Source: Auanema rhodensis (Eukaryota > Animalia > Nematoda). From it: a stretch of 64,000 nt of DNA. The notes under the pieces were generated by a model that saw only the letters and a program-made list of their open reading frames with translations, was not told where the DNA came from and did no database searches. The position numbers and the translations under genes are program-made. Of the stretch, positions 1 to 10,122 are shown piece by piece (the stretch's first letter is position 1; every line of letters begins with the position of its first letter). Where the stretch lies: NCBI GenBank assembly GCA_964057225.1, contig OZ059894.1, forward strand, positions 6,882,001-6,946,000. Direction: 5' to 3'.

Positions 1-2835
1 AAATTCAGTTATTTGTGGAACCATATTAGTCCAAAAGAATCGTCGTCGAATCGCATCAGTAGTTTTATTTATACCTAGGTGTGCACCAATTTTGGAATCT
101 TCGTGAAAAAATTTGATGACAACATCAGTTATTTTGTCGTTTCGCGGCAAAATAATAGATGGTTTTAAATAATTTTTCACTTGTTTTGCATGTAATATGC
201 CTTCTCGTTCTTCATACCGGTCTGATATATTAGCCGGACAGTTATCATTATTAATTTGAGAAAGTGCTTCGCGAATCCAGGGAACTCCAGCTTGAACTTT
301 CCGTATTTCTTCACAATTTAGTTGGTCAATAGAAGAAATAGTTGTAATATGAGCAATAAAAGCATCAACAGGTTTTACTTTGTCCTTTGGTTTAGTAGGA
401 CGACTGTCATTTGCTTCGTTTCCTATATACCTGGAGAGAGCATCACAGACACTGTTTAATTTGCCAGGACGATATTCAATCTTTATGTTGAAATCTTGTA
501 TCATTAGTTGATACTTGGCTAATCTACCTATGAGATCTTTACGCGACATTAAACTGGTTAATGGTCGGTGATCTGTGATAACTGTGGTAGGTACTCCTAA
601 TACATAGGTACGGAATTGTTGAAGAGCAAAGACTAAACCGAGTGCTTCAACTTCAATAGGAGGATATTTCCGTTCCGCTGGAGTCAACTTTCTACTAGCG
701 AACGCAATCGGGTGTAATGGAGAATTTTTCTCTGCTGATTGCAATAAAACTGCTCCCACAGCGATCATACTGCCATCACTTTCTATAACAAAAGGTTGGT
801 CTGCTTTAGGAGGTTTCAGTACAGGGGCAGTACACAGTAATGTTTTTAAAGTTTTAAATGCGTCTGCATGTTCCGATTTCCACTCAAAAGGAGTATCCTT
901 ATGTGTTAACTTATACAATGGCTCAGCTATTCCGGCATAATTTTGAATAAACCGTCGAAAATAGTTAGTCATACCTAGAAAGGATCTGACAGCCGTAACT
1001 GTGCTTGGATTTGGAAATTCGGAAACAGCCTGTATTTTAGCAGGATCTGGTTTAACACCATTTCTACCTATTATAAAACCCAAAAACTTTACTTCAGTGG
1101 CTGCAAAACAACATTTAGATAACTTAATTTTTAACCCTAGTTCAGTGACCTTTTTCAGCACTTCTTGTATATCTCTTAAATGTTCATCAGCTGAGTTCGA
1201 AATTATTAGCAAATCATCTAGATATACAAACAGTTTGCATCTAACAAGAGATTGCAAGTATCGTACTGCGGATTGAAAAGTGTGTGGCGCTCCACACAAT
1301 CCCATAGGCATTCGGCAATACTGATAGGTACCTGATGGAGTGGTAAAAGCAGTTAGGTGTCTATCTGAGCGTTTCAACGGTATTTGGAAGAAACCAGAAA
1401 TGAGATCAAAATTCGAAAAGAACTGAGCTCCAGCCGCTAAGTCTATGATATCAGGAATGTGTGGGATGCTGTATGTTTGTTTCTTAGTAACACTATTCAA
1501 TGCTCTAAAGTCAGTTACGAACCGGAAAGAATTATCTTTCTTTTTCACAAGAACAACTGGACTAGTGAAAGTAGCCGTCGAATTTTCGATTATACCTTGC
1601 GACAACATTTCTTTCACTTGCCGTTCTACTTCTTCTTGCTTACCCAATGGTACTCTGTAAGATCTACTTTTTGGGAAATCCATATCGGATCTTATAGGAA
1701 TGGCATGTTCTACTGGTCCGCAAAAGAGACCAATATTATGATCATGGTTGAAAAATGCCGTTTGGTTTTCCTTAATGATTGTGATCAGATTTTTCTTCAT
1801 TTTATGGGACAGAGTGCAAGAATTGAAGTTCAAATCATCCAAAAGATGCTGAGGAAAAGTTGGTAACTTATCTTCCCAATCAGCTTCAGGTGGAACATAA
1901 TCGTTCATAATTTCTTTAGATGCTATAAGTCCTGAACCAATGTGGTCATTTTTATTAATTTTAATTGGCTTTGAAGAATTGTTTGATACTACCATAGTAA
2001 TAGGAAAAGGTCCTATGGCGGCATCTGGAATTGAGATAGGACCTATGCTAGATTTTAAAAGAGCATATTGATCAAAATCTAATTCTGGTCCTGTTTGCAA
2101 AGATATGTGGGAGGTACTATGTGGTGGAACTGTTACTGTGGACAAACTTATGATATTTACTGTTTTAGTTGTGGTTTTATATGCAAAACAACCAGGTTTT
2201 ACTAAGGGTGTTTCCATATTACCAACAATCAACTTTCCTTTACATAGTTTTAATGTAGTAAATATCTCTCTTTCTTCCAACGTACGCATAAAATCAGTAC
2301 CAAGTAACATTTGTCCTGGACAGTCATTGTCTTCAGATATTAAAAATTCGTGTTCCACTTGGTAACCTGCTATACCCACATCTAACTTGCATTTTCCCAC
2401 AAAGCGAAACTCTGATCCATTTGCAGTGGATGCAGATTTAGAATATTTTGTAAAATATTGTCTTCCAATATATGCCAATGTGGAGAACGGAATATATGAG
2501 ACCGTAGCTCCAGAATCCCATAATGCTAACAGTCCTCTACCTTCAATGTCAATATGAACAAACGGTAACATGTGTCCATTTTTCTTTGTTGTTGTGTGAC
2601 ATACAAAAGGTATGGCTAAAGGAATGTAAGTTATTATGGTGGGAAAATAGCTCCGCATCAATTCATCACTAACTGTTTCATGAATCTCATCTCCCTCAAG
2701 TGGTGGAGCTGTTGGGCTCAACATGATATGGTTTATTTTTAACATAGAAGTAGGGGAGAGATAACATTTTATAGTGAAATATAATGCTATCATTAGACAT
2801 AATATCAGAGTTATACAACCGATGGTAATGAGTGT
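1..2835 (-). CDS. pol: Pol polyprotein frame (TM remnant, aspartic protease, reverse transcriptase, RNase H, start of integrase); 3'-partial
   Basis: Manual translation gives ALWDSGATVSYI (protease, ~2500-2530), SPVVLVKKKDNSFRFVTDFRALN and FVYLDDLLII (RT), ESDGSMIAVGAVLLQ / EVEALGLVFAL / TDHRPL / CDALSR (RNase H), and HEDSKIGAHLGINKT...FFW (integrase zinc-binding start). It is missing from the ORF track because it runs off the window. Confidence 0.95.
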
Positions 2836-3035
2836 TCATTCAATTGAACCTATACAAAAGTCAATGAACAGATCCCAATTGGAGAAAACAATTTTCCTGG
2901 CATCTCTTATAAGTTTACTTCCTTTGAAGATAAAAGAAGAAATTTGAGGCCAATCATGTGAACGAGAAATTACGCGGAGAAGATTATGGTGAGGTGAAGT
3001 AGATAAACTATAACCATAAGTTAATCCAATAGAAG

Positions 3036-3614
3036 TTAATCCAACGTTTTCAACATTGGTTCCCGCTCGGGATCCATTGGTGACATTATGGTGCTTGCCA
3101 TTCTCTCTAATTCCATACTAAAATCAAGAACAGATTTATCTCCTTGTTGTACTCGATGAATAAGCGCTATGGTGAAATTTTTATCTGTTTTAGGCGCTAA
3201 AAGCTCAGTGAGCTGATCCATCAAAACAATCCATGGGCCATTAGTTTTTATGCCACTAGGAATACTATTATACAAGGAGAGAGCTGTTTCATTTGATTCC
3301 AAAAGAAGAGGCAAAATTAATAGTCTCTCAGGTAAGCTTAGATTCATAACATTAAAAAATCTATTTAAAGATTCAACAAAAGAACGAAAGCTACGAGAGC
3401 CGTCATACCTGGGACAGAGATGGCAATTTAAAATAGTTGCCATATTTCTAGAGGGTGGAGCAACATTAGAATTAGGAGATGGAGAGGTAGGAGTCATTTT
3501 TCTTTCAAAAGCTTTAGTTATAGCAGCGGCCCACCGACTTGGTGATCTATTTCGTACTGTAGTAGGTGCCCGAGGTGTTTCCTCAGTGATGGCCTTTCTG
3601 CTTTTACTTCTCAT
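3036..3614 (-). CDS. gag: Gag capsid-like protein, C-terminally truncated
   Basis: PRYDGSRSFRSFVESL and QQGDKSVLDFSMELERMA (resembles the major homology region). It stops shortly afterwards with no zinc knuckle. First ATG is at 3614. Confidence 0.8.
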   Translation of the reverse strand: MRSKSRKAITEETPRAPTTVRNRSPSRWAAAITKAFERKMTPTSPSPNSNVAPPSRNMATILNCHLCPRYDGSRSFRSFVESLNRFFNVMNLSLPERLLILPLLLESNETALSLYNSIPSGIKTNGPWIVLMDQLTELLAPKTDKNFTIALIHRVQQGDKSVLDFSMELERMASTIMSPMDPEREPMLKTLD

Positions 3615-4810
3615 TCTAATTGTTAGAGAAGAAGAGTGAGAAGAAGAAGAGGAATCACCTTCTTCTCTCAAAAATTCAAAAGGAGAGAGGTAGGTGGATG
3701 GAGTATTTAAGTTTTTAGAATTAAATTCAAAAACTTGGCGTACCTCTGGTGATCCTTGTTCCTGATCTTTGTTTTCCTCGCTGATGTCCGAGTCCGACAG
3801 GGTGGCTGGTGAATACAGTTAGATGAATATAAGAGCGCGTACTGGAAGCAACTAGACTCCAGTAAAAACGTTTGTGACAATGGCGTCTGATGAAGGAGGA
3901 TCGTTGAAGCTTCAAGCTCCGCCTCCAGCCATGTGTCACGACACCAGATGTTAGCGCTTATGGTAAACAACCATTGACCGTCTGTCGTGATATTTGAATA
4001 TTATAATCACTTATGTCAGCTTAGAGACAAATAAGGAATCACAGATGGTGCCTTAAGCCTGTTTGAAAACTTTTGAATTTTAACAGCTGTTATTGACTAC
4101 ACATATCGAACAGCTGGTACGCGTGGGCCAACTATTTGAATGTGAGTAAGCTTAAAGTAAACAAAAATGTCTCATCTCGTATATTAAGTTCAATTTTATA
4201 AAGTTTATTAAGATTTGTAGAAAGAATTTCAAAATAAATCTTAATTAAGATAATTTTTAATTTAATTTCAAAAGATTTAGAAGGTAATTTAAGATTGATA
4301 TAGGAATTTAAATTCAGTAATCTGTCAATAATATAGGAAAGAGGAAACGTTGGCAGACGTAGAGTGGACTTGGGTGGGTAGGAATTTAAATATTCTTATT
4401 ATCTCTGAACTAATAAGAAAAGAGTTAACAGGAGTAGAACCCTGATGAACCCTTGGATGTGAATCAAAATCAAAAATCGTAAATAAAATTATCCCAACAG
4501 CCTCCAGCTTCCAAACAACTCAGCTAAAAAGTGAGCTCTGTTGCCACACTGGACATTCACATCATAAAGTAATGAATCAAAATAGCACGCGCGTGCATAA
4601 CAAAAAGGTAACGCTCGTCAAAACTATTGTCTGATAGTTTCCCCAAACGTCTCAGACACCTCCCAGTTTTTGTTGAGCGGAGGAGAAGTGGTAGCCAAAA
4701 TAATTTTTGGGGAAATCATGGTGCACGGCTCGGTTACTCCTCACTGTTGGGTAATTAAGTCCAAAAGTCTCGTAAACTTGCTGTCAATAAATTAACAGTA
4801 GAGTAAGCAA

Positions 4811-4823
4811 GGTGGAACCTCCA
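4811..4823 (-). promoter_or_regulatory. Primer-binding site of element A, complementary to the tRNA-Gln 3' end
   Basis: Minus strand reads TGGAGGTTCCACC immediately after the LTR end, matching the eukaryotic tRNA-Gln 3' end ...GGTGGAACCT-CCA. Confidence 0.88.
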
Positions 4824-5204
4824 CGTTACATATCGTTTCTTCCCGTCTTTTCATGGTCGGAAGATATATGTACTTCTACCTTGTTCCTTAGGTAGGCAGA
4901 CCCGAACGCCCCGATTTCCTTATTAAGACAAATACTCAAAGAGAAAAGGATTCATTATCAGATAACAAGAAAATACAATATAAGAATTACATTAAGAAGG
5001 AATATAAAGAGATATAATAAAGTATTAAATAGAGTATATATATAGATGATATAGAGATGAGACTCACATGACTATAAGACAACCTATCTGGGTTAGACCA
5101 GAAGCAAGAGTGTCATGTGTGTCCCATGTTGTAGGCGGGGCTTGTTCAGGCTCCCGCTATTTGGATGGCGCGCACATGTTTACCATGTGCTTGCAGATGT
5201 GACA
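4824..5204 (-). repeat. 5' LTR of element A (381 bp, TGTCACAT...ATGTAACG)
   Basis: Bounded by the PBS on one side and the interrupted tRNA on the other. It has imperfect terminal inverted repeats and an AATAAA on the element strand near 4920-4925. The partner LTR lies outside the window. Confidence 0.85.
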
Positions 5205-5237
5205 GACCCACGCTCTAACCGACTGAGCTATGGCGGC
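5205..5237 (-). pseudogene. 5' half of a tRNA-Ile(AAT) gene, interrupted at the anticodon loop by element A
   Basis: Identical to the first 33 nt of the intact copies (GCCGCCATAGCTCAGTCGGTTAGAGCGTGGGTC). Its upstream flank matches the array spacer at 9598-9634. Confidence 0.93.
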
Positions 5238-5274
5238 CACGAATCTGGCATTTCGCTATCAAACTTTGTTATAA

Positions 5275-5687
5275 TGTTCCATACGTGTCCTATAAGTAGA
5301 GCGATTGACAACGTCAATCGCTTATAAAACGGAACATTATAAAAACAAATAGCTGACGCTACATTTGAGAAACAGGAATTCAATGCAACAATGAACGAAC
5401 ACTTTTTCATATTAAGTTTAATTAAAGAAAGCCCAATTCAAGCGGAACCAAGTTCCGCGGACCTGATATAACCACTTTTTATGCTCGTAAGGAATACTAT
5501 ATAAGGTTTCCTTACGAATCCTTTGGGCTGCGACTAGGAATCATTATGTAACTTTTATTATTGTAATTTGTATACTTTATCATGAATAAACCTTTCTCTC
5601 TATACTCTTTATCATTTATATTTGGAAGAAAAGAAAGTAATTCCATGTGGTTACCCAGCCGGAACCCTGGGGAACCACCATGGAACG
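5275..5687 (+). repeat. 5' LTR of element B (TGTTCCAT...ATGGAACG)
   Basis: Identical by eye to 9057-9469. Contains TATATAA (~5498) and AATAAA (~5585). Confidence 0.96.
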
Positions 5688-5708
5688 TGGAGGTTCCGCC
5701 GAGATTCG
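5688..5708 (+). promoter_or_regulatory. Primer-binding site of element B, complementary to the tRNA-Gln 3' end
   Basis: TGGAGGTTCCGCCGAGATTCG directly follows the LTR. It pairs with tRNA-Gln ...AATCTCGGTGGAACCT-CCA with one G:U. Confidence 0.9.
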
Positions 5709-6309
5709 TCTATAACCGACGAATCTCTAAGAACCATATTTCGCTACATAAATTTAATTTTGTTGTCTTTCATACATCTAATTAAAGAATTATATTTCGA
5801 TTATGCTATATGAATTTAATTTGAAATCTTTCTCTTCTTTATTTCATTCATTCAAAGAACTTTATTTTGATTTTGATTCATAAATTAATACTGAAATCTT
5901 ATATACATTTATTTAAAAAGATATATTTTGAAACAACTTAATTTTGAAATTTTATATTCATTCATTTAAAAGAAACATTTCGATTTTTATCCATATTCTA
6001 AGATCTTTCATTCATTTTTGAGGAAAAACTTTGTTTATAACTATCATAAATTAATTTGAAATTCTTTTATATTTATTCATTTAAAGAAAGGTATTTCGAT
6101 ATTTTTTTTTCTGTCAATCTTTTCTTTTTCTGTTTTTTTTTTTTTTTTAATCAAAATCTATTCTATCTCTCATAAATTTTTGTTATAAGTTTCAAACAAT
6201 TTTTGAATCAAAAATGAATTAATTTCTTTCATGAATCATCACAAAATTCATTGTTTTATATATATTAAAATTCATTAATTTCTATTCTATCCTTTAAAAT
6301 GTATTACTC

Positions 6310-6312
<3 letters not shown>

Positions 6313-6361
<49 letters not shown>
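6313..6361. repeat. (TA)n microsatellite inside element B
   Basis: About 24 perfect TA units. Confidence 0.95.
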
Positions 6362-6365
<4 letters not shown>

Positions 6366-7145
6366 GTACAAAACTATTCTATACTAGTACTATATTCCTA
6401 CTATATTCCTACTATATTCCTATTTTATTTTTCTTTTATCTTCTTTTAAATTTTATCTTTTTCCCTCTCTTATTACTATTATTTTTTCTCTTCTTCCTAA
6501 TATAACCCAGAAAACAGTCAAATAATTTTGAATTTTTTTTTTTTATCTGAATCCCGAAACTAAGATTTATAATTTTGCATTTTGATCCTAAAAGTAGCCC
6601 GTGAGAAGCAATACCAGACTGTCTCGAGAACTGAGCGGAGGCAACCACTATTTTTGATATAAGACGTACGCATTCCTGATTTTGAAGATCCCTTTTTGGT
6701 CCTATTTTTGCAAATTTGAAAATTACGACAGAATTAGTCGAGAATGAAAGTGTTAGAGTGGTCTCACCATGAAAATCAGGGGAGCAGAATTTCGTTAAGG
6801 GAGCGATTTCTGTGATTTTTCATAGGCAAGAGAAGTCTGGGAAAGTGAATGTACGAGGCCTGAGCACCTAATCTTGTCGAAAGACTGAAAGGGAATACTG
6901 CTTAGATCACCGTCGTATATTTCACGCCTATTCGAGAGATGGGAACTTGATCCTAGAAAGGGCGCACCGGTCACAGGCCCGTGTATGTACCCGATTGAGC
7001 AATTCTCCGTTAGAAGATTCGCTGCAGGCTGGCCCCCTAGCAAGCGTCACGCATACAACCCCATATTGCCTCTCACGTTGTATATATATTTTTATAAGTT
7101 TCGCATCGTTGGTATAATAATTTCCTTTCCAGGAAAACCAACAAG

Positions 7146-7882
7146 ATGACGGACTCGAAGAGTAAAAATCCTCCGCAGGATAAAACAAATCCACAGAGCG
7201 CAGCCCCCGGTAATGATACGCACGTCGAGCCAGTACTCGAGCGGAATCAAAGAAAAAGAGGACCTCCAAATGTTTATGAGCCGGACACGAAGCGCCGACC
7301 TACTGCTGCAAAGAAACCACCCGCTATACCGGGTACCCCCGCGAAAAAAATAGGCACAACAGCTATCAAAACTTCTCGCCACGCTATTACTCTTAGTAAA
7401 ATTAAAACGTCTATTAACAAACAAACTCCTAAACGCAATTCTAACGTTATCAAAAGCTCTAGCTATGTTAGCACACATACTTCCCCTTGTAAAGATTATT
7501 CTCAAATATCATTTTCATACCCAAATACTGCTATTCTTTCTTCTCCTCTTCCTCGAAATTCACCAAACTATCAGAGAAAATAGAAGAAAACGCAAGAAAA
7601 GAATTGTATGAGGAACGGAAGAAAGAGCCACCCACAATTAAGAAATGGAGTTCAGCACTTAAATTGGCATTGGGATTAGAAGATAATTCTCCTACAACGC
7701 CAGCAAAGCCTTATCATGTGCCGATAAGGTATCACAGCACCATACCAGTAACAGAGCCGAAGAAGAGAGTTTCGAAGAGTCAGATCCCGGACCCAAACTT
7801 CGTGGCACCAACAGTACCAGTCATCCATAAGAAAAGACCGTCAACAGTTATTGGGACTACAAGTAAGAAGCTAGAACAATAG
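7146..7882 (+). CDS. Element B ORF1: basic Lys/Arg/Pro-rich protein, apparently split by a frameshift (7146-7583 plus an overlapping frame to 7882)
   Basis: ATG lies 13 nt after a TTTCCAG acceptor. The second frame is already open before the first stops (TKLSEKIEENARKELYEERKK), and both halves have similar composition. Confidence 0.55.
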
Positions 7883-8251
7883 TAAAAATCCATAATTTCT
7901 ATATAAAAATCACAAAAAGTATAATACCATTTTCATAATTTTCATAATTTCCATCTAAACTTGAACCTATATATATTTTTTTTTCTCATTTAAGTAAGAC
8001 ATAAAATTCTACACAAATTATTGTACATTTTTATTTTTCACTCTCATAAAAATATTGTATTAATAACCAAAATTTCAAAATAAAATTATACATCATACTT
8101 GGAATCTTTCAAAAATCACTGCAAAGTTTTAATCAACAATCTTCATCACTTTTTCACCTAACTGGTCAAAAAGGAAGCGACAAAAAGGAAGGAACAGACC
8201 GACCTAGTTTTAAAAAGGATAAAAGGACAGAAAACAGTAACAAAGCTAACA

Positions 8252-8854
8252 ATGTCCACCCAACTTCCTGAAGCCGTCGAAATTCCCCTCATGATGGCCA
8301 AAAAGAGATGGCTTTCAATTCAACTATTACTAAGAGAATTGAAGCAGCTAGGCGCCAATACCATCGCCAACCGCCCCAGGAAAGAGAAGATCCTGAAAGA
8401 GTTAGTTCAAGGACTAACAAGAGCGAACACCAGTACTGAAACGCTCAAAATCTTATGTTACCAATACGACAAGGATCAACTGTCGGAGGTTGACCACTGC
8501 ATAGGACCATGGACCAACATAGCAGGAGTCATCCGAGAAGCCATTGCTGAACTAAGGGACCAACTAGGTTATTCACCTAGTTGCGCTTCACCAGAACAGC
8601 AGACACCAAACTGGATTATTGCCGAGACCCATTCGGCCTATCAAGAATGGAGCCTGCAACATTGCAGCGAACTGCCATCCACAGAGGCAAGAAAAAGCAT
8701 TATAAATGCTCTACAAATATTTCTGGCATCACCAGCAACCACCAAGGAAGAAATGGAAAGAAAAACGGATTTATGCAACAAGACTATGGATCTTCTCCAC
8801 GACCTAGGATCATCACCATTACCAGAGATACACCAGTATTATGAAGAAGACTAA
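8252..8854 (+). CDS. Element B ORF2: 200-aa protein of unknown function, probably helical
   Basis: Intact intronless ATG-to-TAA ORF, GC-richer than its flanks, with amphipathic helical patterning. No family recognised. Confidence 0.7.
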   Translation: MSTQLPEAVEIPLMMAKKRWLSIQLLLRELKQLGANTIANRPRKEKILKELVQGLTRANTSTETLKILCYQYDKDQLSEVDHCIGPWTNIAGVIREAIAELRDQLGYSPSCASPEQQTPNWIIAETHSAYQEWSLQHCSELPSTEARKSIINALQIFLASPATTKEEMERKTDLCNKTMDLLHDLGSSPLPEIHQYYEED

Positions 8855-9056
8855 AAAGAACTTTTGAAAGATTCCCAGTATGATATATGATATATTATTT
8901 TGTAATTACATTGTTTTCCTTTATTTTTTCTCATAAAATTGTTCTGTATTATAAGTATTCTTTTATTTTTTGAAACATTTCATACAACTTTCACATTTGC
9001 ATGGAATTTCACTTTCTCGATGTAGCTGAGGTCAGCTACTTTTTCGATATTAGGCA

Positions 9057-9469
9057 TGTTCCATACGTGTCCTATAAGTAGAGCGATTGACAACGTCAAT
9101 CGCTTATAAAACGGAACATTATAAAAACAAATAGCTGACGCTACATTTGAGAAACAGGAATTCAATGCAACAATGAACGAACACTTTTTCATATTAAGTT
9201 TAATTAAAGAAAGCCCAATTCAAGCGGAACCAAGTTCCGCGGACCTGATATAACCACTTTTTATGCTCGTAAGGAATACTATATAAGGTTTCCTTACGAA
9301 TCCTTTGGGCTGCGACTAGGAATCATTATGTAACTTTTATTATTGTAATTTGTATACTTTATCATGAATAAACCTTTCTCTCTATACTCTTTATCATTTA
9401 TATTTGGAAGAAAAGAAAGTAATTCCATGTGGTTACCCAGCCGGAACCCTGGGGAACCACCATGGAACG
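9057..9469 (+). repeat. 3' LTR of element B
   Basis: Identical by eye to 5275-5687 and followed by the ATAA TSD. Confidence 0.96.
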
Positions 9470-9523
9470 ATAACCTGTGGCAATCAAGTTTTGAATAATT
9501 TAGAAGTTAAAAGAAAAATGTTT

Positions 9524-9597
9524 TGCCGCCAGCAGGGGTCGAACCTGCGACCTTGGGCTTATTAGACCCACGCTCTAACCGACTGAGCTATGGCGGC
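9524..9597 (-). tRNA. tRNA-Ile (anticodon AAT)
   Basis: GCCGCCATAGCTCAGTCGGTTAGAGCGTGGGTCT-AAT-AAGCCCAAGGTCGCAGGTTCGACCCCTGCTGGCGGCA forms a full cloverleaf with A and B boxes and a downstream T-run. Confidence 0.97.
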
Positions 9598-9684
9598 CAC
9601 GAATCTGCCATTTCGCTATCAAACTTTGTTATAACCTGTCGCAATCAAGTTTTGAATAATTTAGAAGTTAAAAATAAAAGGTTT

Positions 9685-9758
9685 TGCCGCCAGCAGGGGT
9701 CGAACCTGCGACCTTGGGCTTATTAGACCCACGCTCTAACCGACTGAGCTATGGCGGC
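9685..9758 (-). tRNA. tRNA-Ile (anticodon AAT), second intact tandem copy
   Basis: Identical to 9524-9597; array period is 161 bp. Confidence 0.97.
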
Positions 9759-9814
9759 TACGGATCTGCTGTTTCGCAAAAATTAATTAGTACACAGATG
9801 TAGTTTGAGGGTTA

Positions 9815-10020
9815 TGTAGCCGCCTTCGGTCGCTTGCTTATTCGGGAGTTCGCCTTCTAGCAACCTCATGGACGGCTTGTAGTTTAGTCTTTATACTTAT
9901 ACTTATCTTATTGTATTATAACTCACTAATTGTATTGTAATGTTGATGTTTCATGTATAATAAACCTTTCTCTAATATCTTATGATTCACCTTATGCTCT
10001 CTATATTCCTTACCGCTACA
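9815..10020 (+). mobile_element. Candidate solo or partial LTR of a third element
   Basis: TGTAGC...GCTACA ends, and an AATAAACCTTTCTCT stretch identical to the poly(A) region of the element B LTR. No TSD found. Confidence 0.4.
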
Positions 10021-10040
10021 CCAAAGAATACTACTTATTA

Positions 10041-10122
10041 TTATTAGAATCACGCTCTAACGGACCCCTGCTGGCGGCAAAATATTTTTGTTTTACCTTC
10101 TATATTGTTCAAAACTTGATTT
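10041..10122. pseudogene. Rearranged tRNA-Ile remnant (two fragments in opposite orientation plus inverted spacer)
   Basis: 10041-10061 matches the minus-strand anticodon/D-arm part (19 of 21 nt). 10063-10079 GACCCCTGCTGGCGGCA is the tRNA 3' end on the plus strand, followed by a diverged inverted copy of the array spacer. Confidence 0.8.

Follow-up and report, generated by a model that had tools for sequence, protein, structure and literature searches.

CG-ended long terminal repeats in env-bearing Ty3/gypsy elements located in tRNA gene arrays of the nematode Auanema rhodensis

In the nematode Auanema rhodensis, one env-bearing lineage of Ty3/gypsy elements has very probably replaced the terminal CA-3' by CG-3'. 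Families A and B show the change at U5, and family D shows it at U3 as well. In the usual terminal CA, it is the A whose 3'-hydroxyl group attacks the target DNA, and this dinucleotide is among the most conserved DNA features of retroviruses and LTR retrotransposons. The host genome comprises 181 Mb in 112 contigs. The window, the whole stretch of 64,000 nucleotides that was analysed, is C1:6882001-6946000; positions given below without a contig name are those of the window. Positions 4811-5708 hold the 5' ends of two LTR elements, A and B, which point away from each other, with LTR-A and LTR-B lying head to head, 70 bp apart, within a tandem tRNA-Ile array. Both LTRs read TG...CG, and a primer binding site (PBS) for tRNA-Gln adjoins the final G with a spacer of zero. 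A preliminary description of this DNA had given the sequences and bounds of the two LTRs, and these are correct, including the end of LTR-B at 5687.

Element A lies on the minus strand. Its internal part (1..4810) includes a gag-like ORF at 3036-3671, and its pol ORF (PR-RT-RH-IN) extends past the left window edge. The PBS of A, TGGAGGTTCCACC (4811..4823, read 4823->4811), directly abuts the 5' LTR of 381 bp, TGTCACAT...ATGTAACG (4824..5204, read 5204->4824). The second (3') LTR is situated outside the window at C1:6880052-6880432 and differs from the 5' LTR by one base, so that the whole element (C1:6880052-6887204) measures 7153 bp. This 3' LTR comes directly after the polypurine tract AAGGTGGGGGGA; on its other side are GGTC and the remainder of a tRNA-Ile gene. 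One copy of the target duplication GGTC is at 5205-5208 and the other is outside the window; the first 33 nt of the tRNA-Ile(AAT) gene, on the minus strand at 5205..5237, are cut in the anticodon loop by A. Since GGTC and the rest of the gene follow the 3' LTR, the anticodon loop is the site at which A entered this tRNA gene, and the reconstituted empty site folds, and is called, as an intact tRNA-Ile. The interval between A and B (5205-5274) is composed of these 33 nt and upstream spacer, and this sequence recurs, as 71 nt, at 9564-9634 in the next unit of the 161-bp tRNA-Ile array.

Element B lies on the plus strand. Its 5' LTR of 413 bp, TGTTCCAT...ATGGAACG (5275..5687), is followed by a PBS of 19 nt (5688..5706), complementary to the 3' end of tRNA-Gln with one G-U position in this copy, the first 13 positions of which (5688-5700) are TGGAGGTTCCGCC. 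The internal region (5707..9056) contains no pol and has a 200-aa ORF at 8252-8854. The 3' LTR (9057..9469), also ending ...ATGGAACG, is 100% identical to the 5' LTR. The sequence before it, ...CGATATTAGGCA (9020-9056) with the tract ..ATTAGGCA, is not purine-rich, unlike the corresponding tract of A. The target duplication ATAA is found at 5271..5274, on the upstream side of the cut tRNA-Ile gene and some 35 bp away from it, and again at 9470..9473, and a paralogous empty site from the neighbouring array unit, ...TTGTTATAACCTG..., is present at 9631-9634. Two intact tRNA-Ile(AAT) genes on the minus strand, 9524-9597 and 9685-9758 (together 9524..9758), belong to the 161-bp tandem array that A and B have entered. 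Further along, a plus-strand fragment of a fourth LTR type, termed E, occupies 9796..10062, its start being approximate, and ends ...CTCTAACG at 10062. The fragment abuts the 3' part of a tRNA-Ile unit (10063-10121) whose orientation is opposite to that of the array to the left, and this junction has the appearance of a rearrangement, not of a simple insertion.

The terminal G belongs to both LTRs of each element and is real, not a chance base. Among copies in the same genome, the downstream LTR ends read ...GTAACG in 34 of 34 cases for A and ...GGAACG in 28 of 28 for B, with unrelated flanks beyond, and perfect 4-bp target duplications enclose all 36 LTR pairs (22/22 for A, 14/14 for B). The preliminary description had held that the integrated U5 end is CG and had named other copies ending in CA, or bounds that shift on alignment, as grounds for abandoning the idea; all 62 downstream ends keep the G, and the duplications fix the bounds. 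Genome-wide, 313 junctions read AACG|TGGAGGTTCCRCC, and the reversed-pattern control gave none. A, C or T stands directly before TGGAGGTTCCRCC at 24 junctions (23 A, one T); flanking sequence was examined for 20 of the 23 preceded by A, and 20/20 read ...ATATTACA, the end of family C. A CG without a preceding A (BCG) occurs before TGGAGGTTCCRCC at one junction, a GCG variant copy of family D. The two LTRs of a pair are 99.7-100% identical and the copies are 97-100% alike, which points to recent activity or insertion of A and B. Overall, hundreds of near-identical copies bear these CG ends.

The bounds of the window copy of A are ambiguous when that copy is taken alone, since its left flank, GGGTC, would allow a 5-bp duplication with an LTR ending ...AAC, the G then being a flank base or a 1-nt spacer before the PBS, and seven other pairs are equally ambiguous. 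If this were the general case, the fifth base, before the left copy of the duplication, should match the G at the right. It is G in 8 of 36 pairs, close to the chance expectation of about 25%, and is another base in the remaining 28, yet the G at the right end is always there, at 62/62 downstream LTR ends regardless of the sequence that follows. Therefore, with 4-bp duplications in 36/36 pairs, the elements begin with TG and end with CG; the 5-bp reading was ruled out on the fifth-base count, and a misplaced boundary is hardly credible. It was also considered that the copies might have multiplied along with the tRNA arrays, through segmental or tandem duplication, or that the ends are private mutations, in which case they would say nothing of the integrase. 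Duplicate loci with identical flanks do occur (L008-L011, L015/L016, L039-L042, L116-L118). However, the 36 pairs are distributed over seven large contigs (C1, C3-C8) and have 4-bp duplications of 33 different sequences, as is the case for separate integrations, and the G is common to families with otherwise dissimilar LTRs and integrases that are 48% identical. Spread by array duplication was thus ruled out for the de-duplicated set of 36 pairs, and we give next to no credence to this explanation of the ends.

The CG U5 end is common to families A, B and D and to the fourth LTR type, E, whose R region shows a relationship to those of D and B. It is thus a property of a lineage and not of single copies, as had been proposed, and in D the U3 end is CG, too. 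With 315-367 first-look candidates, D outnumbers the other families. All 20 of its sampled junctions read CGGAACG|TGGAGGTTCCACC. In ten independent D 5' flanks the homology starts exactly at CGTTCCATTCGG (CGTTCC), with any base before it, and in 40/40 best LTR matches (about 15 pairs) the alignment runs from base 1 to base 337. Therefore, D is CG...CG, and its ends form a perfect 6-bp terminal inverted repeat, CGTTCC/GGAACG. The termini of D rest on these flank and LTR alignments, the counts of 4-bp duplications being those of A and B pairs. The LTR pairs of D delimit elements of either about 11.5-12.6 kb or about 3.3-3.9 kb, a division that suggests, by analogy with B, an autonomous element and its shortened derivative. 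The first 1.5 kb after the D PBS contained no ORF of more than 90 aa and no similarity to the coding regions of A and B.

Family C is a separate, canonical group, which starts with TGT and ends ...ATATTACA|TGGAGGTTCCACC. It is found in the same genome and shares with the CG families the tRNA-Gln PBS without a spacer, the integrase clade, and the location in a tRNA array, but it differs in its ordinary CA end. Against the 313 AACG|PBS-Gln junctions stand only 23 with A before the PBS, and the 20 of these that were examined are CA ends of C. Since C keeps CA with the same host and the same primer, CG is not a property of either. One C copy (L151, C1:6558400-6568399; TGTTATAC...ATATTACA) lies in a 271-bp tRNA array. 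An internal deletion places an integrase-only ORF about 200 bp past its PBS, and a 688-aa ORF with a weak match to a MULE transposase is next; a 3' LTR was looked for in this copy and not found.

The PBS is of the tRNA-Gln type with zero spacer, as the preliminary description had it, and it matches the genome's own tRNA-Gln genes. The tRNA-Gln(CTG) and tRNA-Gln(TTG) genes (L223:1443-1514 and L225:1443-1514) end ...ATCTCGGTGGAACCT, and the PBS of A is the complement of the last 10 nt of tRNA-Gln plus CCA. The complementarity to tRNA-Gln plus CCA extends over 13 nt in A, C, and D and over 19 nt in B, and in none of the four families does a base separate the LTR from the PBS. B shows additional pairing potential, since its terminal G follows 11 nt (CACCATGGAAC) with perfect complementarity to nt 2-12 of tRNA-Gln (5675-5706 compared with L223:1443-1514). 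Therefore, with these 11 nt and the 19-nt PBS, the B template can pair with both strands of the acceptor stem. This extended complementarity is shorter in the other CG families, with 5 contiguous nt for D and 3 for A.

The domain order of A pol is PR-RT-RH-IN (Pfam: RVT_1, RT_RNaseH, Integrase_H2C2, rve), as it is in the full-length forms of A and B, and therefore A is a Ty3/gypsy element (Metaviridae). The hallmarks of the group are present, namely the LTR pair, the tRNA PBS, the 4-bp duplications and, in A, the polypurine tract; the usual termini, 5'-TG...CA-3', are absent, being replaced by TG...CG in A and B and CG...CG in D. Full-length A measures about 10.1 kb and the full-length form of B 12.2 kb, and in both a glycoprotein domain sits between gag and protease. 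In the B form, this domain is recognized as PF24664 (55.7 bits against a cut-off of 27) and lies after Retrotrans_gag and before the protease; in the A form, PF00606 alone is matched, at 20.6 bits, which is below the cut-off. The window copy of A is without 2986 bp of the env region when set against the ~10.1-kb copies (compared with L129), and it is in these 2986 bp that the longer copies encode the glycoprotein-like portion of a 2264-aa reading frame (gag-proximal/env/pol). The closest relatives of the Pol sequences are rhabditid nematode proteins (from Auanema, Diploscapter, C. japonica, and Heterorhabditis) with 41-53% identity, and these carry PF24664/PF00606 domains. By their domain order and their relatives, the elements belong to the known nematode GAG-ENV-POL lineage. 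In a FastTree phylogeny, run without a curated reference set, A, B, and C are in one clade with two Auanema proteins (support 99). This tree does not separate the branching order of the three and is compatible with one origin of the CG end as well as with several. An exact-pattern scan of metagenome contigs gave 51 matches, most of them on GC-rich, bacterial-looking contigs and none with Pol similarity, and no relative was found in the viral contigs scanned.

Element B, with 4195 bp and no pol, aligns at 98% to both ends of the 12.2-kb form, leaving a gap of 8.07 kb. The 8.07-kb segment of the long copy was searched for LTRs of its own and none was found, and a nested insertion was thereby ruled out; the 12.2-kb copy is flanked by the duplication AGAA. 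Judged from these alignments, B is an internal-deletion (LARD-like) derivative of the 12.2-kb gag-env-pol element of its own family, which carries the same LTRs, and this autonomous form presumably supplies the proteins of B. The integrase of A is 48% identical to that of B and 43% identical to that of C. Since the integrase of the B parent is only 48% identical to that of A, the 12.2-kb form is a likelier helper than A, and the earlier suggestion that B is probably mobilised by an A-like helper gives way to descent from this element.

How the terminal G might be made and used can be outlined from the standard scheme of reverse transcription, on which the following steps are modelled. In retroviruses, the tRNA primer is first extended by a deoxynucleotide copied from the base that lies 5' of the PBS. 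The G immediately 5' of the PBS would thus template the first base added to the tRNA-Gln primer, the plus strand of the linear DNA would end ...AACG-3', and the G would be copied into both LTRs and hence inherited. The integrase would then use the 3'-hydroxyl group of the terminal G for strand transfer, and if any primer-derived bases were left beyond the G, it would first trim back to it. At the U3 end, the joined strand would end in the ordinary ...ACA-3' in A and B; in D, it would be ...ACG-3' at both ends. If the A/B integrase joins CA-3' at U3 and CG-3' at U5, it would seem to accept either purine after the C. Families A and B, with CG, and the canonical family C do not differ in the motif of the catalytic helix, NGQVERLHRTLEE, and this comparison across the three yielded no candidate residue for the altered end. 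The retention of AACG across families whose LTRs are otherwise dissimilar argues that the end is functionally maintained.

It is possible, though we think it unlikely, that the integrase is not specialised at all and ignores the terminal base, the G being fixed not by integration but by reverse transcription, either as the base templated first after the tRNA-Gln primer or within a structure formed by U5, the PBS, and the tRNA. The A/B enzyme would take both CA-3' and CG-3', at U3 and U5 respectively, and family C has CA before the same PBS together with the same catalytic helix motif, both of which are compatible with an indifferent integrase; the 11 nt of B that pair with tRNA-Gln, by which U5 and PBS jointly reproduce the two strands of the acceptor stem, would fit a structural role of the end. 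However, this extended complementarity is strong only in B, and in family D the CG is present also at the U3 end, which has no connection with the primer. Such indifference overlaps with the replacement of CA-3' by CG-3' that we favour and does not exclude it. A stronger version of the replacement, in which the integrase specificity of the clade has truly moved from CA-3' to CG-3' rather than become tolerant (the most abundant family having CG at both ends) and has been joined by recognition of tRNA genes, as the first such case in Metazoa, is put forward only tentatively and is doubtful at present.

Termini other than TG...CA are already known, and the statement in the preliminary description that integrases almost invariably join CA was too strong. 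Published types include Tos17 (TG...GA), AtRE1 (TA...TA), TARE1 (TA...CA), and AcCOPIA1 (TG...TA), the TGTT (TG...TT) and AACA (AA...CA) families of Rosaceae, and the seven non-canonical types of LTR_retriever, and the same literature stresses the retroviral CA as essential for integration. Like the present elements, the plant elements of this kind are active or recently active; their termini are often non-palindromic, and motif-constrained finders miss them. They are, however, mostly Copia elements with 5-bp duplications, and none of the types listed is TG...CG or CG...CG, whereas those described here are of gypsy type, from an animal, with 4-bp duplications, and the altered end is shared by several related families. 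A literature search, which did not extend to the nematode papers closest to the subject, yielded no report of TG...CG or CG...CG termini, and as far as we found these two types are new. TGCG is absent from the text of the LTR_retriever paper among its seven non-canonical motifs, which makes it plausible that standard annotation would miss these elements, as had been supposed; pipelines that accept only TG...CA or a fixed set of exceptions would tend to under-report these families, which are among the most active repeats of the genome.

Nematode GAG-ENV-POL elements of the Ty3/gypsy group reportedly have an envelope of the herpesvirus gB type, a description ascribed to Sacco et al. in J Gen Virol in 2022. 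The elements share with them the order gag, class III fusion glycoprotein, PR-RT-RH-IN, as well as the LTRs and the tRNA PBS. The GAG-ENV-POL arrangement is a published one for nematodes (PMC13524379, citing Sacco et al. 2022), and the main text of that article makes no mention of tRNA-Gln or of LTR terminal dinucleotides; the CG termini and the location in tRNA arrays set the present elements apart from those described there. With hundreds of recent insertions, in which at least three related families would join G while a sister family keeps CA, the CG families and their CA sister provide a natural comparison set for asking which contacts between integrase and DNA read the terminal base.

Families A, B, and D are overwhelmingly located in tRNA gene arrays (in the window at 5205-5274 and 9470-9800; elsewhere, loci L003-L060 and L226-L235). 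The genome has roughly 28,000 tRNA candidates in homogeneous tandem arrays, whose repeat lengths are 265 bp for Glu, 331 bp for His, 259 bp for Lys, 177 bp for Leu, 248 bp for Ser, 439 bp for Asp, and 161 bp for Ile. tRNA genes are present within 1.5 kb upstream in 31 of 43 distinct A/B insertions, and a tRNA was found in 23 of 36 reconstituted A/B sites and in 5 of 9 independent D flanks. The arrays make up about 5% of the 181 Mb by a rough estimate (some 28,000 candidates of roughly 300 bp each), so that insertions near tRNA genes, at 31/43, exceed the abundance of the target. In the small sample available for B, the tRNA 5' end is 42-86 bp downstream of the insertion site in 9 of the 14 insertions associated with arrays, in either orientation. 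Insertions of A are scattered, with 4 of 22, likewise a small sample, inside tRNA bodies; three independent ones are within a few bp of each other in units of the His array, and two in Glu units are 6 bp apart. No domain C-terminal to the integrase core was recognized by Pfam in A pol.

Taken as a matter of position in the sequence, this distribution suggests tRNA-directed integration in an animal, although the location may instead reflect a retention bias and not targeting. A strong association of insertions with tRNA genes is likewise known for Ty1-Ty4, Tj1, DGLT-A, Skipper-2, and TRE5/TRE3 (PMC5911963), and the table in that 2018 review of Pol III targeting lists fungal and amoebal elements only. 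In contrast to the yeast and dictyostelid elements, those described here occupy an animal genome, and their targets are tandem arrays of tRNA genes of huge size; compared with Ty3, the positions are much less precise, and A is often inside the tRNA body. If the location is due to targeting, Pol III-directed integration would be extended from fungi and amoebae to animals.

At one further locus of family B (L058, C1:8615257-8616080), two B LTRs are arranged head to tail and directly joined. The joint is a perfect palindrome, ATGGAACGTTCCAT, which is 2 nt short of an LTR end plus an LTR start, and the double-LTR structure is flanked as a whole by the duplication ATGA.
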